Assembly: GCA_964106645.2 (NCBI GenBank)
Contig: OZ067043.1
Direction: 5' to 3' (one strand)
Source of the DNA: Podarcis pityusensis
Lineage: Eukaryota
DNA length: 64,000 bases
Position 1 is the first letter of the stretch; every line of letters begins with the position of its first letter. Under the pieces are notes generated by a model. The model was not told where the DNA came from. It worked only from the letters and a program-made list of their open reading frames with translations, and did not search any database. The position numbers and the translations under genes were made by a program. This document shows positions 23,812 to 64,000 of the stretch, one piece after another.

Positions 23812-23857
<46 letters not shown>

Positions 23858-26800: not shown

Positions 26801-29800
26801 ATCCACCAGGAATGATATGTTATGCTTAAGTAACTGAGGTGCAATACTGTTATTCGGACCAATAGAAATTATTGATTGGTCCTCATAAGGAAACATTCAC
26901 AGAGATATGGCATGTGAGGAGAATGTCCCAATCTGCACTTTGTAAAATGGAGAGGAGAAGGTGTTCTGCAGACTTGGGGGCCAAACTAGATGTGACCCCT
27001 GAGGCGTGTGAATGCATCTCTGTTGCTTTACTTCCCCCTCTGCCCTAAAATAACAGCCATGCCTCTCTCTTTAGCATCAGAAATCCCTTGTTCTATTTCC
27101 CCTCAATCCAGAGCCCTCCTACATTTCCATAACCAGACCAGGCTTCTGCTCCAACCCTCCTAAATCCACGAGCTGTTTGCTTTTTCCGTATGGGAACTGG
27201 TTGTGAAGGATGACCGCGGGAGGCCATTCCGGTTCCCACTCTCTCCTTGCGGGAAAAGGTGGCACTCATAAGAATCTTCCCTGCTAGCTTTAGGTATTTT
27301 CTGATTTGTATTTTCTGGAGCACTGAGGCCTAAGTGCAGGTGGGAGAGAATGGGAACCTGTGTCCCCCCACCCCACCCCAAGGTGTCCAGGGATTGAAGG
27401 CTGACCCAGCAGGACTAAGCATCATTGAACTATGTACCTGTCGATTGGTAAAGGGCACTGGAGAAGGGCACTGCATACTTCTGCCATGTAGGTATGAGCC
27501 AGCTGGGCCAGGACCCCCATCATTATTTGCCTGTCCTGGTACTGGTAAATGGAACCAAGCTGCTGGTAGATCTTATCCACAATTTCCGGCACCTTGAAGG
27601 AAACAAGCATGCTTCAGTTAAGTGCCCTGCTAGAGGGAAGCAGCGCTGGGGCAGGGACCACACCACAAGGTACAAACCAGAGCCCTCAAAGAGCAGAAAA
27701 CAAACATACATTTAAAATATGTCACCCAAAGCATCCTGGGAACTGTAGCTTTGTCAGGGGTAAACTGCAGTTCCCAGGAATATTTGAGGGAAGCCATGTG
27801 CTTTAAATGTGTGGTATGGATTCGACCCCCTGTTTTCATGGCCAAGCAACAAATCATTAAGATATTTATTATTTAAGATTATTTAAGGTATTTAAGATAT
27901 TTATTATTGTTGCACTTTAACTGCTAGGGAGGGGGAGAAGTGCCTGTGGGATTTTCTGTCTCAAGTGCCAAAATAATGTGACTGGACTTAGGCTGGGGAG
28001 GCTATTTGCTCAGTCAGCAAAACATCTGAGGCTGGTCCTGGAGGTGAGAAGGCACAACGATCCCCTGCTCTGGTCATTTGGGTTCTCCCAAAGATTGGTA
28101 GAAGTTGGATGGCCATCTGTCATGGATGCTTCAGCTGAGATTCCTGCATTGCGGGGTGTTGGACTTGATGACCCTCGGGGTCCCTTCCCAGTCTGCAATT
28201 CTATGGTACAGGGAGCAAGCGTCAGCTGATCAATAATTAGGCACTGACACAGGAAAACATCCTGTGAGCACTGACAGAGCCTTGCCAAGACCTTCACCAC
28301 AGATAAACTGTAAATGGGTTTTACGGTTTATCTCAGGGTATAAAATGGTACTGGTGCCTCTCAAGAAGCCGCCTCTGTCACTGCTGGGGTCTCTGCCGGC
28401 TCCAAACATCTCCTACCTGCCCATGTAACCTGTGCATGTATCGCTGCAGGATGACAGATGTGATGTCACGTGATGCCGCAGTGGTGCTCCTATTGGCTTC
28501 CTTTAGGCAGTCTATAGCGGTCAACAAAAGCTCTGTGATCTGTAGTGCTGTGAGGTACGGCAGAAATTCCTAAGAGAGGAGACACAGAGCAGCACTTTGT
28601 GGTAGGGGAAGCAGCTGAGAGGACAACAGCAAGGCAAGCTCAATTGGCAGGGCTTCCTTGTTCTAAGAGACCTTTGCAGGAAGGAATTAAGGGTTCTGTG
28701 GAGGAGCCCGTTCCTCTGCCACTTCACTTGGAAGTTAAATTCAACCAGCTACTTTGCTCCCAAGTAAAGGTGTACAGATTCAAAACCTGATGTTCTCAGC
28801 TTTTTATCTTACGGAGGAAACCAGACTAGTTCTTCTAGCTCAGGACTGTCTTCACTGGCGGGTAGTAAGTCTCCTGGGTTCCAGGCAAAGGACGTTCACA
28901 GCCCGGCCTGGAAATCCCATGGATTGAACCTGAGACCTTTCTTACCCAATGCACGTGCTCTCCCACTGCTCTTACAGCCCTTCTGCAAGTTTTATATCAG
29001 AAAACTGAAAATGGGGGCGATCCCATGCATGCAAGCTCAGAAGTGCCACAGAGTTCAATGGGTCTTTCTCCTCTCAAGGAAGTGCACGCAGAATTGCAGC
29101 ACTGTTGACCTATGATCTGAAAGTGGAAATCTTTGCCTCAAAACACACTACAAAGATGTAGTAATAATTATGGTTCTGCCCCTACCTTACACCCTATCAG
29201 GACTAAGTTACGATGGCCTCTGCAGTTTGCATATCCTCTGCATTGCATCATATCCAGCACTGAACAATTACCTGAATAATATGGGTGATATTTTGATGAG
29301 ACATAGTAGGGTCATAGGAACCCAGAATCTCTTCATACAGTTGGATCTCTTCTGCTTCCAGGGAGTTACTTTTGTTTTCGAAGCCTAACGAGAAAAAGAG
29401 TGACTTTAAAGTTTCTCCAAGCGGAGAGTTTGCTCTCAGGTTGCTGTGTGGGTGTCTGGAGTTTGGAAAAAAGGGAGAGAAGGAGCCAGAATGGCTGGCT
29501 AATGACACATAATGGCCAGGGGCCAAACTGTTCCAGCCACATCTTTTGTTAGGGAAATTGCAGGAAAATGGCACAGAATGGCCAACAAACACTTTGGCAC
29601 TCACCCACAGCTAAGGTGGGTCTTGGGTTCAGTGTATGACAGCAACAACAGAAGTGTGTTTTGGAACAGGAAAGGAAGGCAGAAAAGACACAGACTGCTC
29701 CCAGGAAGCCACTATTTTGCAGGTGAGAATAAATTGCATGCCAACTAGTTAAAGTTGTGAAGGTTGTTTATTTAGATGATAGGCATACTGCTCATTGTAC

Positions 29801-32800
29801 AAGCCACAGCACAGTTAAGTAACTAGAACAAAATAAGCTGTTTGCCTCCTCCAATGCTCCACTTGAACGTTTGCAAATAAAGCAAATATTACAGAAATGG
29901 CATATATCTCTCATCGTCTCTTCTCCAAAAGGAAGCCAAACCCTGGATAGCATTGCCCCTGGAACCTGGAGATGTGGGGATGCATAACAATAACCTGGCT
30001 CGGCCTGCCCCATTCCAAAATCCTCATTAATTCTCAAATTAGCTCTGGAAACTGCAGAGCGGGTATCCTGCTGCAACTGAGATGTGACCACCCATGATTT
30101 GGCACTGAGCTATAGATCAAGAATATCTTCTCCACCAGGGACCTCTCTCAAAGTCCCACTTTGTAGCTACATTAGGCAGGATCTTCTCCAGCTTCTGCAC
30201 AGTGAGGACTACAGGGGTTGTCAGCACAAAATCCAATGCACTATGGCAGAGACAAAAGGAGCATCAAGGGCAAACAGACCAGTGTCTGCAGAACAGCTAA
30301 CTAAATAAAAGCACTCTTTGCTGTTGCACAAAATGGGCATGTCTCTCCAGATTTTTGGAATCCCCTAACAATGATGCAATGCATCAAATTAATAGTCTCT
30401 GCTGTGGATCTTTCCAGAATTCCAGAATACTTCTTTCCACATGAAATAATAGAAAGTTGTTTTGAAAACTTTAAGTTGGTTTTAAGTTGGTGTGCGATTA
30501 TTCAGCTGCAAAGCTGAAGGAAAGCACACACTGGCTTCTGATACCATTGAGAGGCTGCACCTCCTGCCTCACAACAAGAACATTGCAGCAATGTGAAGAC
30601 CAATCTGGCTCCACCCATTGGCTAGTGAAGGTTCCTTCTCCCTCCCCATTCCTTATGTCTAATAGATTGCAAACTTGTGGTCAGAGACAATCTTGCCTTT
30701 TGATATATGTGCAGTGCTTAGAAAATAGGCACCTTATAATAACAGTATTCCTGTAGTTATTTGTCTGCATGTGTGTGCAGGTGTTTTGTCTTTTGCTAAT
30801 GTGGAGGCCTGGAGTTTCTAAGCACCCGTTTTTTCTTCTGTGAAATGGGTATTATGTGGTGCCAACAACAGTTGATTCTTCTTCTTTATTAAATTTATTA
30901 AACACCTTCTCTCACTGCAGGGAACTCAAGGCGTCTTGACAAAAAAAAAAATATTTCCAAATGTGCCCTTGGGCCAAAAAAGAAGAAGAAGAGAGAAAAT
31001 CGGGGATTCCTGATATAATGCAATACTGCCTTTTCAGTACTGGCCCCAACTTGGTGGAACGCTCTGTCACAAGATACTAGGGCCCTGCGGGACTTGACAT
31101 CTTTCCGCAAGGCCTGCAAGACAGAGCTGTTCCGCCTGGCCTTTGGTTTGGACTCAGTCTGACCTTTATGTTTCCTTCTCCTTATGGTCTTGATTTATTG
31201 GCTACTTTAAAATGAGGCTGCATTTTAACCTGTATTTTAAATTGCCCCCCCCCCATTATGTTTTTACTGTGATTTTATTGTGTGTTAGCCGCCCTGAGCG
31301 TGGCTCTGGCCGGGGAGGGCGGGGTATAAATAAAATTAATTTATTATTATTATTATTACCCAGATATAATAAAATACAGGACATAAGAAGAGTCAAGGGC
31401 AACAAGTCAATGGCTGCCAAATAAAGTACAGTCTACTACTTCTATATAGATGCACAGTTTGGATACTGGAGTTATCACAGCTCCTATCTTACCCTTTTGG
31501 CGCAGCATAAGGGAGTACAGGAAATACATGCCTTCCATAGCCTGTTCACCAATTTCCTCTTGGGGGTCATTGAGACGCAGACACAGCTGACCAATCAGAC
31601 GCCCAAGCTTAGGACATCCATCAGGTGACACCTGAATGGAGAAATTGAGAGTGCTGTCTTTTGACACTGCGGGGAAGAGAAGGAATCTTTGTGGTTCTTG
31701 AATGAAAAAAGTTCCCCAGTTTGGATGAACTGATGTTTGGAATTACATTGTCTTTTCCTGATGAGCCTTGTACCCTGTTCAGGCTATTCTCCTCGCACAA
31801 GGAGAGGGAAACAGGGCCATGCTAGCTGCCTCTACTGGCTCCACCATGCCTCCAACAGCCAGCTCTGCCACCCCTCCACACACAGGAAGGCAAACAACTG
31901 CAGCAGGAAGTCTGCTGCACTCTTAATGAGAACAAGCCTTGCATGATCAGGGGGTTCTGAGTCATGAGGGAAGCCTCCACAGAGACAATAGGCTTTGTGC
32001 GGCAGACACTGCAGAGTGCCAGTGTGTTGTTGTGGTTAGAGTGTTGGACTAAGAACTGGGAGACCTGGGATCTAGTCCCCATTTGACCACAAGGCTTGAT
32101 CTTGCTTCTGAGCCTAACCTACCTCACAGGACAAAATGGAGGGGGGGGGGGAACTATGTACACCAACTGAAGTTCCTTACAGAAAAGGTGGGATATAAAT
32201 GTAATAATAATTTTATTTATCTGATTCCATTTATGAATCAATTCACATAAATATATCCAAGCAGCTTCACAGTAAAAACCACAAACACTTAAAAACAATA
32301 GATAAAAGCAGTTTTAAAACCATTTCAAATCCGATTCAGATAGAACTGGGGTACAGACCTCCACTTAAAAAGGCTTGTTAAAGAAGAAAGGTCTTCCACA
32401 GGTCCCTGTGTGATATCTAGTGGAAGGGAGTTCCAGGGGCTGGGTGCCACCAAACTCAGGGCCCAATTCCTATATCATGTGGAATGGACTTCCTGGTGAG
32501 AAGGCATGTGCAGAAGGCTCTCTCCCTGTATATATAGAGGGCGAGATGATCTTTTAGATCATCTGGTCCCAAGTTGTACAGCTGTCTATGGTCTTACTTT
32601 TGCCCTTCCATGTTGCATAGGGGTGGCAAGGCTGGGCAATGGGGATGTGACGGAAGTGCTGGCTAGCTCTCTCACAGTTATCCTAATTGTGTGGGGCAGA
32701 ATACCTTCACAGGGTTTAGATTCATACCCATTATCAGTTTGTAGCAGCAATACTGTGAAAAGGCTATGGCTCATGGCTGTAGCATGGTTTTTGCAGGATA

Positions 32801-35800
32801 TAAGGGATTCAAGTTATAATAGGCCAGTTTTGTCTCTAATAGACCATTTGGATATTAGAAAATGTCTTGTTCATTTGCTTCTGGCCATCCCAGACTCTAG
32901 TCACTAATTCCCCACCCCCTTTTTCAGTAGAAGAATAGTGATGCAGAAATAAAGCACCAGATTCCAGTGAGTACCAGTCCCTAAACTTGCTAGCACAGTC
33001 AAGAGAAGAGACATAGGGTTGCTCTTTTGTTTGGTGTGTGCATCCCTTGAACCCATCCTAGGCCCCTCTAACCTTTTCACAGTCTCTATCCACTCACTTC
33101 AGAGCACAAGAGGAATGCAATATTCACACTACAGAGCCATTCACATCTATCTACCTCCATTTTCTGTCTTAAACATTTGCAGGTCTCACAAGACCCATTG
33201 CCCAGTCGCCTCAAGCCAGAGGGCAGAACTCACATGAAACGTGGGGCAGGTGGCTGCAAATTTTAACAGGGATACATAGGTGTTCGCTGCTCTTGCCCGC
33301 TCATGTGCTTGTCCTGATATCATCCAGGGCATCAAATGCTGTAAGGGTAGTGGGAGCAAACTGTTAGCAACTGTATAAGAAGAGAAAGTGCATACTATTG
33401 TAATTCTTCAAAGTCATGCTTTTGTCTTTCAGAAAGGAACCCAGGAAGCTGCCTTATTCCAAGTCCAGCCATCATTTCATTAAGCTCGCTATTGGCTACG
33501 CTAGGGTTTCCCAAACTTGTGTCGCCAGCTGTTTTTGGACTACAACTCCCATCATCCATAGGTAGCAAGACTAGTGGTCAGGGATGATGGGAACTGTAGT
33601 CCAAAACAGCCGGAGACCCAAGTTTCGGAAAACCTGGGTGGGGAACTTCAGGCATGGACCCTTCAGGTTGCTCTCTCAAAGCTGTCAAAACCTCACAGAG
33701 AGGAAGTAAGCTAGGTTACTTCCTCCCTCATTTCCCCCCCCGACCCTGACACTTTTCCTGGTTTCCAAAGATTAAAGAACATGGGGAAAGGGCACTTCCT
33801 GTGTTACTTCCCAATGTCAAGGAAATTGAAATTCCACTTTGGGTGCTTTCCTTCCGGTCTTTAAAGTTCTGAATAATGTCATGCTAAGTACTGTCAACAA
33901 TCTTATGGCTTGCTGTCTGGCCTCTTATTCCCGTTGTTGTAACTCTCCCTGACCAAACTGAAAGGAGCCATTCTGAGTGGAAATCTTTGAAAATTAATTT
34001 TAACACCCCCTAAGAAAAACAAAAAACCCACAAGTAGATTTCGGTGAATGAGGCACTTCTATGCTCCATGAGCAGCAAATGCCATTTCAACCAAAGATCT
34101 GTCTGAGAGAGCGTGGTGTGGCAATCACACTGTTTGACTATAACAGGGCACAAACTGGTTCAAATCTCTACTCAGCCATGAACCTTATTGGGTGATCTTG
34201 GGCCAGTGAGTATCTCTCATTCCACGATGACTCACATGGTTGTTGTGAGGATTGTATTGGCACGAGGAGAACCATATACACCAAGAAAGAAAAGAAAAGA
34301 AAGACTACTTCATGAACCTAGCTATAGGGCATATTCTCATCACTTGTGATTCTTTGAGCCACAAATAGATAACAGGAGCTTACTTCTAAGAGTGTGGCCA
34401 GTTCATCTATGTTTGGTCTTTCTGCCAATAAGCTTTTCAGCATTGATTCTATAGCCTCTAAGGTCTGCTTGTACAATGCCTGAGAAGGAAAAAAAATGTT
34501 GCATAATATATTACTATAACATTGCAGGTGCAACACCTGCGGGAGAGGAAAAGGCTAAAGAGTAAACTCTACACAAATCTGGAGTGGAGTCCCTAAGATG
34601 GTTGGGTGGCACCTTGTACGCCTGTTTCCAGCAACTCCTGCAGCCAAGCTTGTGCCAAATGTATTGCTCTGCTTTCCTTTGGACCACTGCAAAAGCAACA
34701 CGGGAGGCAGCAGTTACAAGTTACCAGTCTCTGTAGCCATAGCTGTGATTCTCCAGCAGTTTGACTTCACCCCTGGAGGTGCACTCCATTGTCTCTCAAG
34801 ACAGCTGGATGCCAACAGTGTCCATGAACTGACATAACTAATAAAGCTGTGATTCAAAAGTGAGTGTAACTCTCCCCCATAAGCCCTATTACAGTGCATA
34901 GGGGTTGCCTAACAGTGAACAACATGCTCAGTGTATTTCGTCCTACTTTTGCCCAAGGATGGGTTAAGATGGTTGGGGGCCCTGGTGCAGTTCCCAAAAT
35001 AGGGTCCCCTTCTTCCTAAAAAAAGGAATGCATGAAGTAAGGTCCCACAGATAAGTTTTGTGATATCTTAAAGATTAACATGTTTATAATGGCATTAGCT
35101 TTCTTGAACTACACGCAAAAACCCTCTTTCACACTCTCAGCAAACTGCAGGCAATTTTTTTTTCTTTTTTGTGAACCTTGATAAACAAAAACTCATTGTT
35201 TTTGCTCACTTCCTGCCCTGGGCCGGTCACCAACCCAGCTTCACCTAGCTCACATGGTCATCGTGAACATATAGGAGGTACAAAATGGCTTCAAAAGGGA
35301 ACTTAGGGCTTGTTATCATCAACATCAAATTTGGGTTCCTTTAACCAGACTGATGTATCTTTGTTCCACACAGGGTCATGTTTTTGCCGCCCCCTTCCCC
35401 AAATCAGTACAGTTCTTTCTCTTTTCTTTTTAAACCGTATAGATTCAAACAGCAAGATGTTCTTATTCGGGCACATACCGTACCCTCTCCATAAGCAGTA
35501 AATTGGTCGTGAGAAATCTTATGCCCCCCCAGACTGGACGCAAAATCTCACCAGCCCCAGCTAGAATAGCCAAAGGCAAGGAATGATAGGAGCTACAACC
35601 CAGCAAGAGACATCTGGAGGGACACAGTTCCCCCCCACACCTGCAACAAAGTGAGAAAATACCTGTACGTCAACTTCTTCTTTGCTCTGACTTTGTAAAG
35701 TGTCAATTGAGGGCAAGGCAAAGACGCTGGCAATGCAAGTGCTGAGCAGCTTCTCTTTAGGCCAATGAGAAGGCTCCACTTGGCTGAGGAATGGCGGTCG

Positions 35801-45309: not shown

Positions 45310-46740
45310 TTAGCGAGTCTGCACTTTACTCAGCAAGTTAACAATGGCTTCTTTGGTAAGGAACAAAGTCTCATTAGTATTTTGATTGCATACTTCAAAT
45401 AGAGAAGGCTCATCCAAAACCTTCTTGCCACCTATTATAACATAGGGGTACCCAAGTTTACTTGCATCCTTTAATCTTTTACCAATGGTGAATTGTGTCC
45501 GGTCATCCAGTACTATCTCCTCCTTAAGCCAAGGGGCTGCTTCAACAATACAGTCATATAAATCCTCCAGGAGCATTGCCCCTTTCTCCTCCTTGCTCCC
45601 TCTCTTTGGGGGAATAAGGCAGACTTGATATGGTGCAATGAGGCTTGGCCACCGAATGGCGTCCTCAGTAGAAAGCACCTCAATGGAGGCTGCAAGAATC
45701 CGAGTCACACCCAGCCCATAGCAGCCCATTTCAGCCGGAATATGCTTATTTTCTGCAGTGCGGACGGTAGCATTAAAAACAGAGGAGTATTTTGTGCCCA
45801 AGAAGAAGGTATGGCCAACTTCAATCCCTTTGTACTCAGCTAGTTTCCCTTTGCAAACTGGGCAATGCTTCTCATCTGGGTTTATCGTTTCCTCATTGGC
45901 TGCAAAGTCGCAGCCTGTGCACATCATCAATCGGTCCTCACCAACGTCAGCGGGCAGCTGGAATTCATGAGACATTGTCCCCCCGATGCTTCCAGTAGCT
46001 GCTTGGACTTTCACAAACCGAAGGCCTAAGTTGTTGAATATGTTGCCATAAGCGTTGCACACAAGGGCATAGGTCTGGAGGGCAGCTTCCTTGGAGGTAT
46101 CAAAGGTGTACATATCCTTCATATAAAATTCTCTGCCACGCAGCAACCCAAAGCGTGGTTTTGGCTCATCTCGAAACTTTCTTGTTACCTGGTACAGCAA
46201 GAGGGGAAGCTGCTTGTAAGACAAATGGCCTTGGGAAGCAATTAGGTCTGTGATGGCCTCTTCATGAGTAGGTCCTAGGCAGTATTCTTGATTGTGCCTG
46301 TCTGCCAGTCGTAATAGTTCACTGCCCATGAGTTCCCACCTTCCACTGGCTCTCCAGAGCTCTGCTGAGCTCAATGCGGGCATGTTCACTTTCTGACCCC
46401 CTATAGCCTGCATTTCTCGGTCTATCACTCTGATGAGCTTCTCCAGTGCTCGGACAGTGTAGGGCATATAGTGGAAGCAGCCGGGACTGGCTGGGTAGAT
46501 AAGTCCTGCTAGTAACATCAATCTCTGACTTTTACATGTCAGTTCACCTGGTTTGCTGGTTTGCTGTGATGCTATGCTATCCTCCCGCAGATTCATCGAC
46601 TGGAAGTGCTGGGATACACACTTTTGTCTTGCATGAAGATCACAATAAAACCTGCAACACTGTTGCTGCTTTTGGCACCAACCAAACCAATTTTTCAAAC
46701 CAGGAAGAATCGTTTTCCCTCTTCTGAGAAGCCCATCCAT
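45310..46740 (-). CDS. PARS2: Mitochondrial prolyl-tRNA synthetase, 476 aa, single coding exon
   Basis: Class II aaRS (bacterial-type ProRS) motifs SGRWELMGSELLRL, LGPTHEE, YQVTRKFRDEPKPRFGLLRGREFYMKDMYTFD, IEVGHTFFLGTKYS, MGCYGLGVTRI and WPSLIAPY. A splice acceptor (polypyrimidine-CAG) at 46776-46775 precedes the ATG at 46740. Confidence 0.96.
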   Translation of the reverse strand: MDGLLRRGKTILPGLKNWFGWCQKQQQCCRFYCDLHARQKCVSQHFQSMNLREDSIASQQTSKPGELTCKSQRLMLLAGLIYPASPGCFHYMPYTVRALEKLIRVIDREMQAIGGQKVNMPALSSAELWRASGRWELMGSELLRLADRHNQEYCLGPTHEEAITDLIASQGHLSYKQLPLLLYQVTRKFRDEPKPRFGLLRGREFYMKDMYTFDTSKEAALQTYALVCNAYGNIFNNLGLRFVKVQAATGSIGGTMSHEFQLPADVGEDRLMMCTGCDFAANEETINPDEKHCPVCKGKLAEYKGIEVGHTFFLGTKYSSVFNATVRTAENKHIPAEMGCYGLGVTRILAASIEVLSTEDAIRWPSLIAPYQVCLIPPKRGSKEEKGAMLLEDLYDCIVEAAPWLKEEIVLDDRTQFTIGKRLKDASKLGYPYVIIGGKKVLDEPSLFEVCNQNTNETLFLTKEAIVNLLSKVQTR

Positions 46741-48075: not shown

Positions 48076-49187
48076 CCTTACTAAATAGCATCCCGACTCT
48101 TTAAATGTTCCTCTTTTTAGGCTCCTTGTTGCAGAAGTTTCAGTTTGCCGGCCCAGAGTAATGGGAATAGATATGAATTAATAAAATTACTAACTAAAAA
48201 GGCCAAAGCAGGAAAAGTTTAGTTTCTGCGCTTTCAGTGCGCAAACAAGTCCCAGAAATAACTGGAGGAACACTCACGTTAATTTCCTTCAAATCACCAC
48301 TTCAAATCCCTTATTGGTAAACGGAAATTTGGCAGAAATTTAAGAAAGGCTTCCCCCACCGAGTCACACAAACCCCCCACACAAAGCAAAATATAGCTTA
48401 AATTTGTGTGCTTGAGGAAGGATGACAGGCGACATGGAAAATTTCGAGAGATGCTGCTCTCCCTTTATTAGGTGGATTCATTGGGGAAGGCTGCTCCCCT
48501 TAGGCAACCATTTGAGAGAACAAGATATTCCCCATCCTCCACCCTAAATGAAGCCCAGCACTGTATCTGTAGTGTTGAAATATTGTGTTCTGGGGAAGTT
48601 CTCGGAATGAGTGCCTAAAACAGTCCCTGCTTGGAAAATTACGATCAAAAACAGGTATGGGCAACCTTTGGCCTTCCCTGTGTTGCTGAATTACAACCTT
48701 CACCAGCCACAGCAAGCTGGTCCGATGGCCAGGGATGGTGGAAGTTGAGTACTATCTGGAGGGCCAAAGGTTCCCCCACACCTGTTCTAAAATACATTGC
48801 ACACAAGGAAAAGGGGGTGAGAAGAGATATTTACCTTTTTGACTGCACTTGGCCGTGCCACATTTACTCGCGCTTTTGTAACTTCTAGGCTTGGCTATTG
48901 TAGGGTGCTGTGTGTAGAGCTGCCCTTAAGGACAGCTCTGAAGCATCATTTGGTCTAGAAGGCAGCTTTTTAAGGGTGGGGAAAATGCATTCCCATATAG
49001 CCTGTTTGCATTTGTTGCACTGACTATCGCTATGGCTTGAGGCCCAGTCTAGATGCTATCTGTACCAAAGTAAAAATATCGCTCTTTCAGTAGAGCCATG
49101 TGATACTTTCATTTTTTATTCCCCCCCCCCAAATTTTTTATTGGTTTTCCAAATTTATAACAAACAAATAGAAAAAAGAACATCAAA

Positions 49188-49220
49188 AAACAAACAAACA
49201 AACAAACAAACAAACAAACA
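49188..49220. repeat. (AAAC)n microsatellite
   Basis: aaacaaacaaac... Confidence 0.85.
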
Positions 49221-50071
49221 TTTATCCTAATTGTAACAGTTCCACTTTTGTTAACATTGTTGGGTGACTTCCTCGAATCCCCCTGGCTGAGTTTCCATAT
49301 AAACCATTGTAGCAGTTTTCCAAAACTATTTTCACTAAAATTTACTTGGTCAATTAATATCTTTCTTTCTCCATGTGATACTGTACTTTCAGTTGGTTTG
49401 ATGCTTGTCTCTTTGTTGTCAACAACTCTCTGGTCCTAAACCTTTTCCTGTGAAAGTCTGTCACTTTCTCCATGCTAATGATTCTTCTATAAAGCTTGCT
49501 TCACTGTTAACTGCGCAATACTGTAGAGTATACAGTTTACAAAACCAGATTGGCCATATATTTTGGGTGGGTGGTTTTTTTGTTATCTGATCAGGCATAA
49601 GAGCAGTGAGATTTGCCCCCCCCCCCCCCGAAGTTGAAGAAGCCTGGTAGCTGTAGGATAGAGTTAGTTTTGGTAATATGGGAAAGTTTGACTTAATATT
49701 TCCTGTTTTCTTCCTTCCTTACGCACTAAATCGTTTCCTCGGGGCAACAACATGGGGGTAGGAGAAGGGAGTGGTGGATAGAAAAATTGGCTTTCACTGA
49801 ATGGACATTTTCAGACTATCCTAGGGCAATTGTTTCAAACACAGTTATGTGCGGTCATTAGGGTTTTTGTTGTTTTTGTTCCAGTGTGTATCATTTTACA
49901 TCAATGGGTGCCAACATTTTGGGGCTGTGGTCACATTTGGAATTTTGAATGAGTGTCATGGGTACCAATCTATGGCTTTTAAACTGGTGGGGTTTTGTTT
50001 TTATTTGTTACTAAGTTTTTTGTTTTTTTTTATGTTGTAAACTAACGTTTGCTCATCAGATAAAGGGTGCT

Positions 50072-51019: not shown

Positions 51020-51100
51020 TGATCCCACCCTGTAAAATTATTCTTGCTGTGATTGGTTAGGTCAGTCTTTATATAGCCTTCAAGTATTTTATTGGGAGCG
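51020..51100 (+). promoter_or_regulatory. Putative CpG-poor core promoter of the LSS-like gene
   Basis: Inverted CCAAT (ATTGG 51052-51056), AGGTCA half-site 51059-51064 and TATA-like TTTATATAG 51068-51076, about 180 nt upstream of the ATG at 51255. Confidence 0.45.
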
Positions 51101-51254: not shown

Positions 51255-54200
51255 ATGTCTGATGGGACGTAAGTACATTGTGTGCAATCTATATGCTTTG
51301 ATTAGGATGATGGTTAAATAAAATAACAAAGTGTGCCAGTTGCTTGACTTAATTCATGTTGATTAAGCAAGCTTTATTGCAGGAGAAGTTCACAGAAATA
51401 AGATGGGAAGGGTAATTAACCTGATGTATTAAGGAATAAAAAGGCAGCAATTTGGGTTTTCTTTTTTCCTGATGATAATTTTTATTAATTTTCAATTACA
51501 ATCCAAAATAGCCTCATTTGCAACAATACCAAATTATAATACAGTTACTAATACCAATCATTCAAATACTGAATTATATAATTTAGGTGGCCCCCCACAT
51601 GCTAGATTTGATGGTTTGATGGTTTTCTTTATTTCTGTGTTCCAAAATCTTCCTGTGTGGTGTAGTGGTTAAGAGCGGTAGTCACGTAATCTGGGGAACC
51701 GGGTTCGCGTCTCCGCTCCTCCACCTGCAGCTGCTGGGTGACCTTGGGCTAGTCACACTTCTTTGAAGTCTCTCAGCCCCACTCACCTCACAGAGTGTTT
51801 GTTGTGGGGGAGGAAGGGAAAGGAGAATGTTAGCCGCTTTGAGACTCCTTAAAGGGAGTGAAAGGCGGGATATCAAATCCAAACTCTTCTTCTTCTTCTA
51901 ATTTCAATTAAATTCCGGTTAAAATAATCCCTTATACAACAACTGCAGTATTAATAACGTCTATTTGTGTTGACACATTAAATGATTTATAGAACTACAA
52001 GTGAGGCACTCAAACTATATCCTTGTTTTTCCTGTGTGTGGCAATTATTCTGTTCGTGGTGTTTCTTCCTGTCCTTGTAAAATGTTATGTCTATCTTTCC
52101 CCCATTGTTGCTGTTCTCCATCATGCCGTGCGTGGAGCTGATACAGTCATACCTCGGGTTGAATGCGCTTCAGGTTGAGCGTGTTTGAGTTGCATTCTGC
52201 GGCAACCCGGAAGCAAAGGAGCGCATTACTTCCAGGTTTCGCCGCTTGCGCATGCGCAGATGCTCAAAATGATGTCACGTGCATGCGCAGAAGCAGCGAA
52301 AAGCGACACGCGTGTGCGCAGATGTGCCATTGCTAGTTACGTTTGCTTCTAGATGCGAACGGGGCTCCGGAACGGATCCCATTCGTATCTAGAGGTACCA
52401 CTGTATCCCATTTTCCCCCAGAAAAGTCTCCATTGCTCTGTCCCGTGCTTCGTCGTTTTGCAGCTTTAACAACAGCTGTAAAAATCACTCTGTCCCAATA
52501 AATAACCTGTTTTCACCATTTTTCCTCTCAGCCTGGGAAGAAGAGTGGTCTGTCGAACTGCAGATGACTCATTAATGAACCTTATCAGTTACTTGGCAAG
52601 TTCACAGACTCCTTTCATCCTTCCATCCAACTGAAGATAAATGAGCAATTATACTTCCAATTAAATTAAATTCCAAGTCCTTTTAGCGTTATTCAGTTCA
52701 CTCCGTAGATAATAAAGGATGGGGAAGAGTCAGTTCTAAGTTTCCATTGTAAATCTTTTGCAAAATAGAGCTTCCCTCCCCTTTTCCTTTTTTTACAAAC
52801 ACAGTTTATATTCCATATCTATAATCCAGTTTCACCCCTCCTAACTTGTACATATATAATTTGAACTAACATTCAAGGGAGGGTTGCCGAATCATAAACA
52901 TAGAGAAGAAAACTTTATATCAAGAAGCCGTAGGCTCCCCCCCCCCCCCGTCTTTTGCACCAAATGAAATTTTCTCTCAAGTTCAAACCTTAACGACCTT
53001 TTTGCTGGTTCTGTTCCACAGTTTATGATCTCATTTCTTCTAGCATGCACCTGTACTTTAGTCCGCAATTTCTTGATACAAAAAAGTGTGAAAAATAGAA
53101 TGGAACTTTTTGATTGTGATTAGGAACAGAAATGAAAATTGGTGTAAAAAGCTTTTGTTGGATTTCTGGCAAAACAACCTGCAAAAACTAACTTGTAAGC
53201 CTTAGGTAATGGTCTTTCATTGGAAAGAGAAACAAGACAGGTGTGGCCTCTGATTCTCAACCCCCCAACGTACTGACGGTTTAGTTATAATAAATTTGCA
53301 ATAAAAGAGGAATGAGATGAAAATAACTATGATGTTACGTGAAGCTTAGCAAACACTATTTGATAACAGAAGGGGATAAGCAGAAGATGGGTTAAAAATT
53401 AATTTAAGTAAAGCAGAGTCTACAGTACATAAATAGTAAATCTTTTTGGAATTGAATTAGTAGTCCTTATTATTTGTCAATTATTGATTTCAAAAACAGA
53501 TTAATTAGTGGAGGCCAATGAAAGACTTATTAGAAAATTGCACCTAAATTTTCTAACATGAAGTAGTCTACTAGGACAGTCCTGTGCATGCTTACTCAGA
53601 AGTAAGGACCACTGTTTCACTGGGGCTTTTCTCCAGGAAAGGTGTGCAAGAGATTGCAGCAAGGAAACCTCCAAAGAGGTAATGTGAAAGACAGACACGT
53701 TAAAATCCATCATTTTCAAGTTTGAAAAGATATTGTGAAGTAGCTAAGAGAAGAAGGGGGGAGATGTTATGTTGAGGAGAAGACTTGGGTAAATGAACAG
53801 AAGTGGGGAGATTGGAAATTAAAGCTGTGATCCTATGCCAAATTATCTGAAAATAAGTCCTGTTGATCAATCTGGGACTTTTGTATAGGATTGCGTTCCT
53901 AAAAATACTACACTAAGGGAATCGGATATAAAAGAAATTCATAAAGTATCCCTGTTAACCTCTTTATGTTCTGAACAAATGTCTTTAACAACTGGGACAA
54001 AAATATGGTTGTAGAGAATAGGGAGTGTTTCCATAATGAGCTAGTTAGAAAAAGCAAAGGATCTATGGGTGTTACATGACTATGCCATACTCAGAGTAGA
54101 CTCGCTGAAATCAGTGGGCAAATTAGTCATGAATAGACCCACTGAAATCAATAGACATGTCAGTTCCTCACTTCTGGCTGGAAGGACCACAGAATGGGGT

Positions 54201-57200
54201 TCAGAATAACTTCCTGTGATAGGATAACAAACCGATAGTCTGCCTGCATGTTTCAAACTCCCCACCTCCTCTGTGTTCTTTGGTAGATGTCTGCGCAGAA
54301 GAAAAGGTGCACATGAAATAGAACCCAAAACTGATCTTACTCGCTGGCGATTCAGCTCTGTGGAAGGGCGGCAGAAATGGTACTACGTGGCAAGCAGTGA
54401 AGAATGTGCCCGTGAACAGAATGCACTCGAGGCTTACACTTTAGGGCTGGACACTGTAAGTGGCTTAATGATAACAGATGGTACAACACGGAAAGGCTAC
54501 AAAAGGAGCCCAGGGCATGAGGACTGCTGGCTTGGCCCTGCCTAGCGGCAGTTTCTCAAGGGCTGGGTCATTTTTCTTTTGGCTTCTCATCTTCTGACAC
54601 CTCAGTTAGGAACACAGGAAGCTTGGTGATTGCTTTCATGGAACTGTGGAAGGGATCATGAGGGTCATCTCCTCAAACCGCCTGCCACTTGGTGCTGTAC
54701 AACTGCAACTTGATAATGTCAGGGTTGAATATGAAACCCTACTTGAAAAAAGACAAGCCTGCAAGATGAATATGACAATCTGCAGGAAATACTGAAATAC
54801 ATAACTTGGTTATCACTTTCTACAAGGCAGCTTCTTCATGCTTGTTGCCTATAATGATGACTGAATTCATCTGCAAGCAGTTTGCGGCCTCAGTGTTTGG
54901 TTCTTAGCCTTGGAAAGGGAGTTGGACTACATGATCTTCTGGTCCGTCATATTCTATAGTTCTCTGATGTGAGAGCTCTGTGGTGTTCTCCTAGAGAACA
55001 GCCACTCTCTTGCTCTCAATGATCAATCTCCAGTATACTGTGCCTGATACTCATTTCCATGATGCACGGATGATGCATCTGCATGAGGCATTTTGATGTG
55101 CGTGAAAATACTGAGGCACATCAATCCAATATGCAGTTTGTTTGGATAAAGGCCTCTGACTGATGGCTGGATTTCTAAACAGTTGTGATATCCCATATTG
55201 TGAGATGTTGGCAGGTGTAGATTTCACTTGAGATGTGCTTGTAAAACATAGTTTTGGAACCGTCTCTCAGGGCTAAACCATCCAGTACATTGAATGACTT
55301 TTTGTATTTAACATGACTGTTGTTTTAAACCGAAACAAGTTCATGAGGGCCCAATCAGGATAGGGATTGGGGTGGGTGAGGAAGAGAGAGTTATCCCTTT
55401 CCCAGCCTGCCCATGTCTACAGGCAAATACAAATAACAGCTGGCGATGGGCGTTTCATTGAGACTGCTGCTAGGAGGGGAAGTGTTAAATGACACCTCCC
55501 CATCTGCCATGGTCCCATTCCTGACTACCCTTCCCTGCTATATTTATTTCTAAGTGACCAAATAGTTGCATGAAATGTAGCAGGACATTTAACACAATGC
55601 ATACTTTGTCTTGTAGATAGTCTGTTTAGTTTTTGTGCATTTCTCTTACTTTTCCTATTTTGTTTTACAGAGCAAGTTCTTTCCAGATTTGCCCAAAGTT
55701 AGCACCGCCCAGGAAGCAGTCCAGAAAGCGATTAAATTCTTCTCTGGCCTGCAAGCAGAAGATGGCCATTGGGCCATGGAGTGCTCTGGCGTTCTCTCTC
55801 TTGCACCAGGTACATGGACACTAGCGGGTTTACCACATATGCATTAACTGGCTAAGGAGGGCCTCCCTGTATATTTTCTATAAATTTGTTGATCTTCTTT
55901 TACCAGACAGACAGAAATAGGTTGATATTTGGAGAAACCTCTTAAACTGAGGCCTTCTTTTAAGAGCTATTATGCAGTGTGTGAATGTTCCTCGCTCGAG
56001 ACACTTCTCCACTCTCTGAAAACTTCTTTGATCTCAGTGTCATGAATGTCTTTTTCCATGCATGAGAGGCTAAACCTTGAACCCTCTTAATTCAGAAGGG
56101 AGTTTTTGTAACTAAGATATATATCCCTGTTATCTTCCATCACTACATAATTATTTCTGCTGACAGGAGTGTCAGGGGTTGACACTTAGTCTTCCATTAC
56201 CTTCCCTGGAAGTCTGATCCCTGGAAGATGTGTATGTTCTTCAAGCCAGATTGCCTTGGGTCACCTGCCTGGGAAATTCTTCATTCTCAGAATTTCCTAT
56301 AGTTAAATTTATATATATATTTAAATCCCTCTATTTAGGAAAATGAAGTCTAGCCTCTCTCACAAAGCAGAATACAGTGGTGCCTCACAAGACGAAATTA
56401 ATTCGTTCTGCGAGTTTTTTCGTCTTGCGAGTTTTTTCGTCTTGCGAAGCACGGTTTCCCAAAGTCTTCAAAATCACCAAAGTCTTCAAAAACCTCAGAA
56501 AAGGCTACCACACCGCGTGCTATGAGTTGCTCCTCGAAGTCACCCTGGGTATTAACGGTTTTAAGAAAAAGGAAACAAACTTGCAAGACGTTTTCGTTTT
56601 TTTCGTTTTTCGTCTTGCAAAGCAAGCCCATAGGGAAATTTGTCTTGTGAAGCAACTCAAAAAATGAAAAACTCTTTCGTCTTGCGAGTTTTTCTTCTTG
56701 CGAGGCATTCGTCTTGCGAGGTACCACTGTACTTATTCAGTATATCCTGAACAGGGGGATAATCCATTGAATCCATTGTGCAGGATACTGTCCATCGGTG
56801 GCATCATACAGCTGTATGGAGATGTGGTAGACCAGATGATTTAAATTTTTTCTTCCCCTTACAGTTAATCTTAATTATTATTTTTAACTGTCTTTACTGA
56901 AAAGTTTAATATTTCCTGTAAACCACTTAGTGGGATTACGTCACTGAAGTGGTATATAAATAAATAATAAAATTTGATTTGTGTGCAGATCAAGATGAGA
57001 GAGAAATTTGATTCAGTTTGCAGTTAAAGGTCTTATTAGCACTTTCAGAAACAGTTTGAGAACTGAAACACAGGCATTCTTTGAAGTTCGCTCTTCACTG
57101 ATTTTTGTAGTGCATATCCCCAGCCAAGTAGTGTGTACAATGGCATATACTAGAGTAAAAACATAAATCTTGTTATGTTTGACCTTTTTCTTCTGTTTCA

Positions 57201-60200
57201 AGATGGTAAAAACAAACAATGGGGTACAAAAGCATAAGTTACGTTTCGATATCCAAACAGGCGGTTTATTGGCAGATCATACCAAAGTTAAGATTGTCAA
57301 GTACTACACATCTTCTTCTTCTTCTTTTTTAACCAAACAGCTATTTTGATGTCATGTTATGCTGCCAAGATCTCACTACCAGAAGAGGTTGAGAGAGAGC
57401 TCCTGCGCTACATCCTCTCAAAACAGCTTCCAGATGGTGGCTGGGGCCTGTAAGTAGTCCAAGGAGGGTGTGAGCTTCTCTAGAGTGGCCTAGGGAGAGA
57501 TGTTCTAATGCTGCATATCTTTGTCTTGGGCTGGTCCATGATGCAATTCCCCCATGAAGGCTTCTTTAAATCACTTCTGCATTCTGCTGTCTTTTGACTG
57601 TGAGCCTTTTATTTGCAATACTCACCATGTGAACTGGGCACCAGGGTAGATGACCAGAATGCAAGCTGGGCTCAGCATGTACTGAAGTTGCCCAGCTGTG
57701 GCGGAGAAAGATAGAATTCTGGCATGAGGAGTGGAGAGAGGCAACAATAATGAAGACATAATATCTGACATAGCTATTGCCTTTGAAAAGCACCATCTCT
57801 AGGAAGTATTACTATTGATAAATGGTGTGGTGAGGCCAGGTTGCCTCCATCCAAATGTATCCTGTCAAACCACAAAATGGATTGGAGTTTGACTGAGCTT
57901 TGAATCTGAATTCTTAGTAGCATGGTATCAACTTTATTTAGCTGGAATGGAATTTCAACTGGTACTCAGGTTGTATGAGCTGCTTTCAAGCCCATGCTGC
58001 CTCATGGAAGGAAAGATTTCAAAGCACCAAGTGCCCTTCATTAAGGCATTACTTTTTTAAAAAGGTAATAGAAAACAAAAGAAGGTATTCTGCGGTGTCC
58101 CGGCTAATGGATAGCTGGGTATGGGTGAGGCAAATTCTCAGAAAAGCTTTTGAATTTAAGGTAATACACCAGAAGAATGGAAACTAAACAATTCAAAGAG
58201 ATTTCCAGACCTCTGGACTCACTGGTCCACTTTCTAATGGCTCTTTGATCTCTCTTTATTGTAGCCACCTTAAAGAACAGTCAACAGTATTTGGCACAAC
58301 CTTTAGCTACATAGCTATGCGAATCCTTGGACTTGGGCCTGACCATCCAGATGTAGTGCGGGCTCGGATAAATCTCCACAAGAAAGGTAAGGCAGAAATC
58401 TCCGCCAGGGCTGGATCAATCCATTTTACTGGAGTGTAGTGCCCAGGTAAAGCTGGGGGCCCTGATGTAGTTATTTGGGAGCATCTTCCTATTCTGCCTC
58501 CCCCCCCTTCCTCCCTTCTTTTGTGGGTCCTTTTAGAAATCACCATAGACTGATCATAGAAATTGTGTGTTTGTCCCAAATAGAAGATGCTGGTCATATC
58601 TTCCCTCCCATTTTCCCTTCTCTAAAATTTATATTGGGAACTCTTGGGATGGGGGACATGGACCTGCCCTTTTATGCCACTCTGTAATGCACAATATACA
58701 GCGATAAAATTTTATTTTACTGTATTCTTAGAAATACAAAGAATGAGGTGAATTATAACCTCCCTTTTGCAGCAGCATTTTGCGGTGAACCCCCCTCTTA
58801 ACTACTGCTTAATCTTTTTGGTTTTATAAAGAAAACTCTCTGGTACTTGGAGACTTAGGAAAGTTAAACAGGGAAAGGTTTTTATTTTACAGAAACAAGG
58901 TGATAAATGCACAGCTTCTTTTCAGTTATTTCACTTCAGTTCCTAAAACTTAAATGAGTAGATGTTACAGCTTTGGCCTTAATACCTGGGGTCTTAAATA
59001 AGGTGGTGCTTGCTGTCAGTTTCCCAACTTTCTGTAAATCACACCCCTGAGGCTCTAATAGGATTACAGGTGATCACCCTCCAACTGGTTTGGGAATCTG
59101 CTTTTTCTCTAGAAGTTCTGTCACCTACTTTCTGAACTGGGACCCCAAGTAGAGTGTCCCCTCATAACTCTACTTATCCTGTCCCCAATTCAGCTTCCCA
59201 GTTTTTCTCTTGTCTGTACACTCCTAAAAAGACACTAATTAATGTCTTTCAAACTAAACTCAGCAGACTTCCATCTCTGGTTACAGATATTTTCCTCAGA
59301 GTGGAGCTATACACCTATCTAGCTGAACTCCAAGAACGCCAACTTTCAACTCTTCTCTCCCCAACTGTCTCTACGGCTTTCTCTTTTTCCTCCCAAAGTG
59401 CGGACTCCACACACACACACACCCCTGCCCAGCTAGTTGTATCCACAGCCACTCAGAAGGAGGCTACAGCTCAGCTCTGGTGGAATTCCAAGGCACTTCA
59501 TCACTAAACTCTGGTCTAGCTGAGCTTTCTGTCACACATTCACATAAGGTTTAATGGAACTAGGAGGTGAGGTGGTTCCTTCTGCATGGATACAGTCTGA
59601 GAAATACATAGCATATGTTTTCAGGATGATCAGGGCATTCACCCTGTCTCTGGGTAGCTTGGGTAGTTATAGGAAAAATGAGGAGGGAACTCTTTGGGTT
59701 CAGCCAGTTCAGAAACACTGCAGTGAGCATAGCTTAAAGTTGTGCAACTGCTACTAGACTTCCCCTTCAATGTGTGGAGTGTGGCCGGGCCAGGCAATGA
59801 GGGTGTGATGGGGCAGGGGTGGGGGGACTGGGCCAGTAAGCCCAGTTCTCTTTCTCCCCCTCGTGTGATGAGGACATAAAACCTGCATAGAGGTAGTGTT
59901 GGGTGGTATTAAATCTGGACACCACAGCAGTTCTTATACTCATGTCTCCACCTGATATGGGTAAGAAGAAATCTGAAAAACCACATGCCATATGGCTCTC
60001 TCTAAATAATAAGAACAATCCTAGAAAAAAGAAAGCTAGGATTAAATGTCTTTGTCGTGTTCCTGTACAATAGAGAGTCTTTCTAAGCACCCATTTCCCT
60101 TTTTATAGTTTTGCAAAGTATCTTCACAGCAAGGCAATAATCATATCTAGGTTCTCATTGTAAATTTATTTGGCTTTGTCCCCTTCAGTCTACAGAAGCA

Positions 60201-61388
60201 AAGATGTTGATAATTCTCTTTCTAGGTGGCGCTCTTGGAATCCCTAACTTGGGCAAAGTTTGGCTGGCCATTATGAATTTGTACAGCTGGGAGGGAATGA
60301 ATTCACCATTTCCCGAGTTGTGGTATGTGTCTGAAAGTTTACTGATCCCCACCCCACGCCACCAATCATGAACCCCCCCCCCCCAAATGTCTACAGTGTT
60401 GCACAGTAGACAAATTCTTTATTAAATAACAGTGACTTGGAAATTGAAATTAATCCATATTAACCTTCACCACTCTCAGAGGTCCAAAGAGGCCTGGGCT
60501 AGTTCCAGTTTTTGAGGCCCCTAGCCATAAAAAAAAAAAGATAAGAATGACAACTCTGGAAAACAAAATAAGGCACCAACAATATAGTGGGGGATTATTG
60601 CTTTGTTTGTTATTATGTTACCGGGTTTTGTGTTTTTATACTTTAAATTGCCCTGATCCTCAGATGAAGGGCAATATAACCTGCTTTTAGTGTTACCACT
60701 ACATCCAGGATTCCTGACATTGTCTTCCATGAACCTGTTTCTTCCTTCTTTCTGAAATAGGCTGTTTCCTACATGGCTGCCGGGACATCCCTCGACATAC
60801 TGGTGTCACGCTCGCCATATCACCCTCGCGATGAGCTACTGCTATGCCACTCGCCTGACTGTAGAAGAAGATGAATTGATCCATAGTCTAAGACAGGCAA
60901 GACAACATTCTCCAAACATCCCACCATCCTCGGTCAAAGTGGGACCCTCATACTTCCTTGGATCTGCACTTGGGGAATTGCTTGCTTGTATCTGACAGGG
61001 AGAAGGCTGAACTGGATGTCTTATTTTCCATTTAAGGCAGAAGTCAAGCTCAGAGCATCGGTGTTTCAAAATGCCATGGGAATATTTGTTTTGGAGAGAG
61101 GTGGGGGCATGTAAACATGCCACTTGGACATCCCTATTCCATAGGGGAGGGCAACTTTGGGAGGGTAGAATTTGGAGTGGAGATGGTGCACATGGCATCA
61201 CCCTGCCAAGTCACATAAGTCTCTCTCCATTCATGCTCTTATTTTAATTTATTTTAATGGCTCTGTGCTTCCTGTGCCACAGAGTATTCATTAACTCTTT
61301 GCCTCTTCTCGTAAAAACTGGTGAACAACATCAATATTGCCTCCTACATCACAGCAATACCACAATCTCCCTTTTTTATGCTTCTTTT

Positions 61389-61432
<44 letters not shown>

Positions 61433-63523
61433 TTTCCTCCCCTTTCTTTTGGTGTGGTAAAAGGAGCATTCTTCTCCCCTCTTCTGTACTACCAGAAAAA
61501 CAAATCAATGAAGAACTGTTGAACCATTAATCTCCTGTGGAGTACCCTCCTCTTTCTCCTCTAATGTTTTATTTATTTATTATTTATTATAACATACTTT
61601 TTTCCATTTAAGTATCAAAATGGTGATGACGTAGACTATTGCTCATGAAAGCTGATGCCATAACACAGGGAGGGGAAAATGCTAAAATGAATTTGCTGGG
61701 GTTTTTTTAAAGCTCTGTAATGACAGTTGTCAAGTACACTAATACCCTGCTTCTTCTTTACTATGAAAGTCATTTCACTTCATGGTTTCCTTCTAGGAGA
61801 TTTATGTGGAGGACTTCTCCACCATTGATTGGCCAGCCCAGAGGAACAATATTTATGAAGCCGATTTGCATGCTGCACACAGCTGGATGCTGGATGCTGC
61901 TTTTGGTGAGTGATTTTGGAATTGGCAAGTCTTTTTCCAGGAGTTCAGGCCTCCAACGTAGGTTTCCTAGGGTTTAGTTGGCACAGAGAAAGAGATTTCT
62001 GTTGGTATAGGCAAACACTTTTCATCAGAGGATATCCATGGAAACACACAACATTTTCCAAGTTTCGTATTATCATATGTAGCAAGCAAATACTTAGCCA
62101 ATTACAAGGACAAGGGATATTGAATCACACTGTGAAGACAGCCTGTGGGATCTCTCACACGATCTGAATTGTGATTTCTACCCCGCCCATTGCTTTTACA
62201 GTGTGAATTGGGATCCATTGTTGATCAGTTAAGGAAGAACAAGATATGTAACTACTTGATGCAGGGGTGCCAACAGGATTATCTGGGTCCAATGCATTGT
62301 ACCTTGATTGGGCTCTCTGACTCACTTGCCAAAGAGAACGCAGATCTGCATAAAATGTGTGTGTGTTGTGTAACATGCAAATTTGTGTCCTCTTTTGCGG
62401 GTAAGGTGGAAGGCCCACAAATGAAGAAGGGCATGTTTTGCTTCTTTACATTCTCATAGTTTGGTGGCCCTACTGATCCCAATGAGAGCTAGTGGGAGGG
62501 TCCCAGCAGCAGTTTTATGGTGCTTAATGACCCCCCCCCATTTGCTTCCCAGTGAACCTTAAAATGATCAAACTGTTTCATTCCATTTCTCTAGATGTAA
62601 CCTTGCCCAAGCCAAAGGAGAAAATCTGGCAGGGATTGTGATTTTGGCTCTTCAATTTTGGGGGTGGGGGTGGGTCCAGGGTGGAGGTTTGTTGGGAAAG
62701 ATTTTGGGAGGGGATCTGCAAAAGGTTCATGGAAGTTGGGGGTAAATGAAAAGAAGAAAAAAACCAAATGACCCCAAACAACTGGTGCCCACCCGTGATA
62801 AACCCCTTCACTCACACCCATGTTCTTTTGCAGACCCCCCCCCCCAAAAAAATCATATTTGAAATTAGGGGCTGAAATCCTGCCTCTGTTTTGAACCAAA
62901 ATATATTTCAGAAGCAAGTGCCATTGAATTCAATGGCGCCCTCTTCCGGGTAATTGCATGGAGGATTGCAGCCCCAAACACATGAGGAAGATAGAACTGC
63001 ATTAACACGATTGCGATGTTCATAGTGACTCTCTTATTCCTTCTGCAGCTACCTTCAATTTGTATGAGAGATACCATTTCACCAGTTTCAGAAAGCAAGC
63101 CATTGCGGAAATGTATGAGCAAATCAAGGCTGACGACATATTCTCAAACGCCACCAATTCTAGCCCGGTAGGTCCTTTGTGAAGAAAAAAATTGTACTGG
63201 GAACAAATTCCTTTTGATGACAGCATATACTCATTCTCCTGAGGAAGCTTTGCTTCAAAAACCAAACAGAGAGCTATATTTGTGGCAATCTTGTTCTGCC
63301 CGCTTGAGTTTCTGTGTTTGGCTGGTGAGATAGACAGGTAGTCGTGTGGCAGATGAGAGTGTTAAGCATGCAGGTATAGCAGAGGGGAATTCCTAACTGG
63401 AATGATATTCTCTTTTGTCCTGCAGACTTGTAAAGCGTTTCATGTGCTAATAAGCAGGTATGCTGATGGAGCCGATTCTCCAGCTTTTCAAGAACATATC
63501 TCCAGGATCTATGACTACCTTTG
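51255..63523 (+). CDS. Oxidosqualene cyclase, lanosterol synthase-like (divergent LSS paralogue); exons 1-10, gene continues beyond the window
   Basis: Exons 51255-51268 (MSDGT), 54287-54455, 55671-55809, 57341-57449, 58265-58386, 60226-60322, 60761-60896 (GC donor), 61797-61905, 63049-63167 and 63426-63523 total 1112 nt and are all in frame. Protein [26 protein letters not shown]...GRQKW...LQAEDGHW...[10 protein letters not shown]...STVFGT...RILG...YSWEG...HPSTYWCH...IDWPAQRNN...[14 protein letters not shown] is colinear with LSS residues 1-370. Confidence 0.93.
51652..51899 (+). mobile_element. tRNA-derived SINE (Squam3-like) in LSS-like intron 1
   Basis: A-box tggtgtagtggt, B-box-like ggttcgcgtctcc, core gggtgaccttgggctagtcac...ctcagccccactcacctcacag, L2-like 3' end and (CTT)n tail. 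Confidence 0.8.
52144..52403. mobile_element. Tc1/mariner-type MITE
   Basis: TA-cagtcatacctcggg ... ctagaggtaccactg-TA. Confidence 0.75.
56375..56729. mobile_element. Tc1/mariner-type MITE with internal TTCGTCTTGC repeats
   Basis: TIRs cagtggtgcctcacaagacgaa / ttcgtcttgcgaggtaccactg with TA TSD; several subterminal ttcgtcttgc motifs. Confidence 0.85.
61386..61433. repeat. (CTTT)n microsatellite
   Basis: tttctttctttc... Confidence 0.9.
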
Positions 63524-64000
63524 GTAAGCCTGGCATATGTATTCAAACCCATCTTTGTAGAATCCTGAACATGGTCTTGCATAAGTGTGCTTTTGCAGAC
63601 CTGGATCTTTCCTCAAACCAAGGTCAATCGGACTAGGAAACGTAAATGGTGTGTACACCTGTGAAAGCCGTAGTATGTGCACACATGAGCACAGATGCTC
63701 AGATGGCAGCTTCATTACTAGGAGTTCTGAGAGGGTGCGGGGGACCAGCAATGGCATGCACACTCTGTAAAGATCTCTGCCTCTGACGTGAACAACACTG
63801 TGCAAATGCAGCTTGCAGTGCAGTAAGAAAAAATCACCTTGTTGTGTTTTAAGCTGCATATGTGAACATATCCTTTTTTGCAGCATAGGTGGAACTCAGA
63901 AAGGTGTCATGCACACCTGCGTCCCACTCATTGTGTTGTCTGGAAGAGATTTCAGGGAGATTTTGCTTTTTGGCTATTCTTAAAGCCTATTCTAGACTTG

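Follow-up and report, generated by a model that had tools for sequence, protein, structure and literature searches.

Animals are reported normally to hold a single oxidosqualene cyclase (OSC) gene, which encodes lanosterol synthase (LSS) (PMC9236903); the exceptions that have been characterised come from echinoderms. The window analysed here, a stretch of 64,000 nucleotides from the lizard Podarcis pityusensis (assembly GCA_964106645.2, contig OZ067043.1), carries beside PARS2 a strongly altered LSS-like gene, raising the question of what such a gene is and what it may do. It is a second LSS copy, full length in the congener P. muralis, with an open frame, with fold positions under selection and with spliced transcripts. 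The reading we favour is a neofunctionalised OSC with a non-lanosterol product, to which we assign a probability of roughly 0.55. No paper on this gene was found in searches for LSS together with lizard, Podarcis or squamate, or for 'lanosterol synthase-like', subscription journals lying mostly outside the search; the gene is called in the public annotation of P. muralis and of the tiger snake Notechis.

The gene and its canonical counterpart

The gene lies on the plus strand and was read up to codon 370, beyond which it runs on past the end of the window. Its ten exons add up to 1,112 nucleotides, or 370 codons and two nucleotides, in an open frame colinear with residues 1–370 of LSS, as the initial annotation had described. 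Every acceptor is AG and every donor GT, except for a GC after exon 7; the phases are compatible, there are no stops across the ten exons and their junction codons, and the window contains no N. Exon boundaries and phases are those of vertebrate LSS (EC 5.4.99.7; 1W6K) over residues 1–370. Residue numbering is taken from the 732-residue LSS of Saimiri, and human LSS was compared as PDB chain 1W6K/1W6J.

Exon 1 (51255–51268) provides the ATG and, in 14 nucleotides, codons 1–5; the P. muralis sequence is identical and the gene annotated there starts at the same point. Exon 2 (54287–54455), corresponding to LSS residues 6–60, is one residue longer than 1W6K. The first QW motif is kept in exon 3 (55671–55809) and the second, KQLPDGGW, in exon 4 (57341–57449); STVFGT is found in exon 5 (58265–58386), together with E146K and D147E, and YSWEG in exon 6 (60226–60322). 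Exon 7 (60761–60896) contains W230-C231-H232, exon 8 (61797–61905) the changes Y286H and P288A, exon 9 (63049–63167) a conserved P337, and exon 10 (63426–63523), the last in the window, the change N343H. The retention of the motifs first noted in this sequence is thus confirmed by the exon reading. The QW repeats and homology to the SQHop N domain place the gene among the cyclases; single exons score below the Pfam cut-off, and matches to lanosterol synthase 1W6K are clear for exon 2 (residues 6–60, E 2e-13), exon 3 (residues 62–106, E 2.5e-10) and exon 7 (residues 217–261, E 1e-15). Summed exon by exon, identity is 52–61% to 39 vertebrate LSS, with 54.9% to Saimiri LSS, in keeping with the initial estimate of about 55%, and 58.6% to Podarcis LSS; canonical LSS from lamprey to mammals are 73–89% identical to a lizard LSS.

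The gene is a second copy because Podarcis has a canonical LSS on another chromosome, which bears out the duplication proposed at the outset. In P. muralis, P. raffonei, P. lilfordi, Lacerta and Zootoca canonical LSS lies on chromosomes of 134–139 Mb and PARS2 on chromosomes of 95–102 Mb, and in P. muralis, P. lilfordi and Lacerta all 27 checked pocket residues of the canonical enzyme are intact. A canonical gene, for which the initial annotation suggested a search, is thus on record in three Podarcis species. Beside PARS2, P. muralis has an annotated gene of 748 amino acids with both SQHop domains and the same ATG, and exons 2–5 of this gene and the window are 95–100% identical. The P. muralis gene is on the minus strand of OZ076958.1 (GCA_964188315.1), with its start near 44,689,330. 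Both the N- and C-terminal SQHop domains are also present in the 661-residue Notechis orthologue and, since Notechis like Podarcis has a separate canonical LSS, the window gene is not the LSS orthologue. The introns retained at LSS positions show that the duplication occurred at the DNA level, and a retrocopy was rejected for the same reason; a mis-assembly was rejected in view of colinearity with P. muralis and coverage in three DNA runs.

Splicing is seen in run X1, which we guess to be RNA from a close relative with exons about 98% identical; its contigs skip introns and give no expression level. They join exons 4–5–6 and 7–8–9–10 at the predicted positions, the join of exons 4 and 5 lying in a loose end, and one contig extends 1,012 nucleotides beyond exon 10. 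The GC donor of intron 7, at 60897–60898, is among those spliced in this run. A loose end of 30 letters after W370, read by hand, gives IGQDGMLIKV, that is, Q379K and G380V in the transcript of the relative.

The ten exons contain no stops, frameshifts or lost splice sites, and the P. muralis model runs to 748 amino acids. Exons 2–5 differ from P. muralis at five synonymous and six non-synonymous sites (pN 0.015, pS 0.039), against a neutral expectation of about 18–20 non-synonymous differences; with these small counts and an X1 run guessed to be RNA, neutrality combined with a lack of spliced RNA does not describe the gene. Of five further coding differences, listed as a selected subset only, four are synonymous and the remaining one is conservative. 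Retention is 74% at positions invariant in vertebrate LSS and 44% at variable positions (p=6e-6). The earlier description of an intact gene with a preserved fold accordingly holds over the ten exons, which are spliced and retain the fold-bearing positions.

The remodelled pocket and channel

Forty-one of the 149 positions that are invariant in at least 98% of 180 canonical LSS are changed in the window gene, whereas the median for a canonical LSS is zero. The loop 96–103 in exon 3 has been rebuilt (G96M, D97E, Y98C, G99S, P101V, F103S), and further invariant residues are replaced in exon 6 (S191N, W192L, F195V), exon 7 (C233A, Q235H, V236I, Y237T, P239A), exon 9 (S334N, I335S, G336S) and exon 10 (I338T, S339C), while W230, H232, P337 and both QW motifs are kept. 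In 175–182 vertebrate LSS there is little or no variation at Y98, P101, W192, F195, C233, Y237 and P239, and the window gene has lost all seven. The N-half pocket residues expected of an LSS (Y98, W192, C233, Y237, I335, G336 and I338) are likewise absent from the window gene; T381, C/Q449 and V453 (PMC2817430) and F444 (PMC9236903), also expected of an LSS, lie beyond the window.

The changes cluster in the cavity and channel, as initially suggested: in a set of 13 pocket and channel residues chosen from general knowledge of 1W6K, ten are changed, compared with 31 of the 136 other invariant sites (p=1.5e-4). An independent set of seven residues from a docking table (PMC8911567) has four changed, a deviation in the same direction that is not significant (p=0.09).

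In LSS, Y98 enforces the boat conformation of the B ring, and C233 and Y237 narrow the entry channel. In alignment, the rebuilt 96–103 loop is closer to plant OSC 8J5Z (GHWPAENGGVS), which we take to be the Tripterygium pentacyclic synthase TwOSC, than to LSS; with the plant enzyme it shares, after the first QW motif, a glutamate, a non-aromatic residue at position 98 and a G-V pair. Unlike the plant dammarenyl-type OSCs, the window gene is derived from vertebrate LSS, the likeness being a convergence at a few residues. Pentacyclic plant OSCs mostly have a tyrosine (MWCYCR; PMC13657253) where the window gene keeps H232. In animal LSS, H232 and Y503 end the cyclisation (10.64898/2026.05.26.727834); H232 of this dyad is present in the window gene and Y503 lies beyond the window.

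Age, range and surroundings

The initial annotation regarded the gene as a candidate lizard novelty, a view that is not sustained: the gene is old and patchily kept, since the tiger snake has an orthologue adjoining PARS2 and crown squamates are probably younger than the duplication. In Notechis a gene of 661 amino acids with both domains lies head to head with PARS2, and canonical LSS is on another scaffold. The region of window exon 1 finds its best match in 10 kb of snake DNA at the called start of this gene, and the match beats 200 local shuffles (47-nucleotide test). The duplicate is thereby shown to be at least as old as the lacertid–snake split.

The window exons were placed on a fixed vertebrate tree, with separate per-exon alignments as partitions and weak resolution; their best position is on the branch of tuatara, of the squamate stem or of the lepidosaur stem. 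An approximately unbiased (AU) test rejected placement as sister to Podarcis LSS (p=0.009), and did not reject lacertid and older placements. K150, S167 and A241 are derived in nearly all crown-squamate LSS, and the window gene, like tuatara, is ancestral at all three; together with the placement, these residues suggest that the duplication probably took place before crown squamates arose. A recent duplicate within Podarcis was rejected on the AU result and the snake synteny. The branch of the window gene measures 0.74 substitutions per site, about five times the longest reptile LSS tip outside birds.

PARS2, the synteny anchor, has its coding exon at 45310–46740 on the minus strand, head to head with the cyclase gene, and is 98% identical to that of P. 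muralis and identical at 475 of 476 positions to that of P. lilfordi, which marks the genome as a Podarcis. Between the two genes lies a conserved non-coding segment (49381–49970), 70% identical in Rhineura, present in part in Hemicordylus and twice in Zootoca and Lacerta; at 10 kb, the Rhineura and Hemicordylus loci are uninformative on the presence of the gene. A reverse CCAAT box and a TATATA element at 51051–51075 on the plus strand, about 180 nucleotides before the ATG in CpG-poor DNA (observed/expected 0.11), form a possible promoter; a 300-nucleotide alignment of the promoter region of window and snake was no better than shuffles. After PARS2 come minus-strand exons of a MAESTRO/MROH-type HEAT-repeat gene and exons of TTC4 (window ~19600–34600 and 9500–14900); at the snake and kiwi loci the stretch from PARS2 to TTC4 has no called MROH gene. 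The kiwi gene ahead of PARS2 is TTC22-like; it ends 700 bp short of PARS2, and the interval contains no cyclase (L008 857–9282). The 5' side of PARS2 thus varies by lineage, with CETN3 in Anolis sagrei, the TTC22-like gene in kiwi and the cyclase in Podarcis and Notechis, and looks like a rearrangement hot spot.

Other LSS-like models occur in reptiles. Those of turtles, 82% identical to lizard LSS, include Mauremys mutica XP_044888607.1 and XP_044888606.1 (G380S, N382S, F444L, V695L), a Gopherus evgoodei model with H232Y and an Emys model with I335V, T381S and V695L, and probably stem from a separate, more recent duplication close to turtle LSS; in sea cucumbers, F444L determines parkeol formation (PMC9236903). 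Several models of the snake Thamnophis elegans (XP_032070632.1, XP_032068335.1) lie on one chromosome and fall within the canonical 90% cluster, one having I338M and F444L and another P337S, I338M and C456S. LSS seems to have been duplicated on more than one occasion in reptiles, the gene models being unverified, and such repeated duplication raises the prior for a real diversification of products. The 120 closest proteins listed in two LSS homology searches were all canonical, and a search of representative proteins with exon 2 returned canonical-like fragments only, 63% identical at best. A metagenome scan for the window gene gave no match, and Atlas gave generic SQHop clusters only. A Logan protein of 78 amino acids, 63% identical and possibly an invertebrate exon, was the sole exon-2 match nearer to the window gene than to canonical vertebrate LSS.

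Proposed function and its alternatives

By descent the window gene is an OSC, and by analogy it most likely works like the LSS duplicates of sea cucumbers, which switched product through one pocket residue (444) within 5 Å of the product (PMC9236903). The parkeol and lanostadienol synthases described there are likewise animal LSS duplicates with an altered pocket, and are the only characterised animal precedent found. In sea cucumbers, however, the genes are in tandem, LSS itself has been lost and residue 444 alone differs within that radius, whereas here LSS has been kept on a chromosome other than that of the copy, and the N half of the copy differs at ten or more pocket or channel residues, residue 444 lying beyond the window.

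The insertion of an old DNA-level duplicate of LSS, introns included, would date to the squamate or lepidosaur stem, with the 5' side of PARS2 as its site. Some lineages would have retained the copy as a functional class II triterpene cyclase whose product is new. All characterised OSCs have D455 of the DCTAE motif, which initiates cyclisation (PMC13657253), and we infer that the equivalent C-terminal aspartate still donates a proton to 2,3-oxidosqualene or to a closely related linear isoprenoid. Since Y98 enforces the B-ring boat, its loss, in a loop resembling that of a plant non-sterol enzyme, makes chair–chair folding or an early stop likely. W192L, F103S and the polar 334–339 loop would give a larger, wetter distal pocket with room for an extra ring or for water, and C233A and Y237T a wider entry channel. 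The expected product would be a non-lanosterol triterpene, either of the dammarenyl type or with a ring system that is truncated or hydroxylated. Its synthesis would be confined to a restricted tissue, with cholesterol still supplied through canonical LSS.

Several observations weigh against this reading. D455, C456, F444, Y503, W387 and W581 all lie beyond the window, and without D455 there would be no cyclase; the pocket changes are far more numerous than in product switches known so far and might just as well abolish activity. The counts behind dN/dS are small. The snake codon matching the lizard ATG reads ACG (L007 849–890), and the Notechis model of 661 amino acids is about 70 short, its annotation starting two bases before the same donor. 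Anolis sagrei has CETN3, not a cyclase, beside PARS2 (L003 1–6087), and Lacerta and Zootoca have no cyclase exon within 10 kb at the orthologous spot. There, colinearity with the window breaks at ~49.7 and 50.8 kb, after which the upstream segment, single in the window, recurs in both species with about 78% identity (window 48238–49964; L006 2940–4540 and 6061–8793; L005 5015–5664; Zootoca/Lacerta loci), a pattern that looks like loss of this unit from a once-duplicated region, although the gene could sit further out. Finally, the papers on lizard and snake secretions that were consulted name no matching lipid or triterpene skeleton, and no support was found for the initially suggested role in femoral glands. 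To our knowledge snakes have no femoral glands and, as they carry the orthologue, these glands are not the whole story.

A maintained pseudo-enzyme or repurposed fold, which no longer cyclises but binds or senses lipids or, for example, hydrates or isomerises an isoprenoid or sterol in the enlarged pocket, would agree with a fold under selection whose pocket positions change faster than the rest, and with G380V and Q379K in the transcript of the relative; it is nevertheless unlikely, given the retention of H232 and W230 in an otherwise rebuilt pocket and the full length of both domains in P. muralis. Slow decay under relaxed selection, with the gene already gone from several lineages and disappearing from the others, would account for the long branch of 0.74 substitutions per site, the ACG start and short model of the snake, a pN/pS of 0.38 that is not very low, and an apparent deletion with different breakpoints in Lacerta and Zootoca. 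The ten exons with open frame and splice sites, the 748-residue P. muralis model, the spliced RNA and the selective retention of invariant positions after an origin older than the lacertid–snake split make such decay decidedly improbable.

The conserved H232 would also suit a tissue-restricted isoenzyme still making lanosterol, or one preferring dioxidosqualene and feeding the 24,25-epoxycholesterol shunt, for whose bulkier or more polar tail the wider channel and distal pocket could be suitable. TTC22 lies on the same side of PARS2 in kiwi, and in mammals DHCR24 lies beyond TTC22. This proposal is quite improbable in view of the loss of all seven of the (nearly) invariant residues from Y98 to P239 listed above. 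It is barely credible that the gene is instead the sole, fast-evolving LSS of this lizard, relocated beside PARS2: although the canonical genes read come from other assemblies than this one, three Podarcis species including P. lilfordi have canonical LSS elsewhere, and P. muralis, for which the idea is already refuted, carries both genes.

A neofunctionalised cyclase remains the preferred reading. In a fuller form, whose odds we put slightly below even, the gene would be a second squamate OSC, older than the lizard–snake split, that makes a non-sterol triterpene through chair–chair or truncated cyclisation, convergently with plants, and would stand alongside other LSS duplicates of reptiles whose pockets are altered. 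Unidentified steroids and terpenoids are listed in wall-lizard secretions (PMC3263623), and for some of these the enzyme would, if this is true, be an endogenous source. It would then be the first triterpene synthase besides LSS in a vertebrate, and a cyclase long kept in lizards and snakes would provide a vertebrate pathway to a specialised triterpene, whose product may, judging from the pocket, be a ring-shaped lipid new to vertebrates. LSS is, moreover, a drug target with a pocket that does not otherwise vary among vertebrates, and the gene provides a natural mutant of it at many sites.

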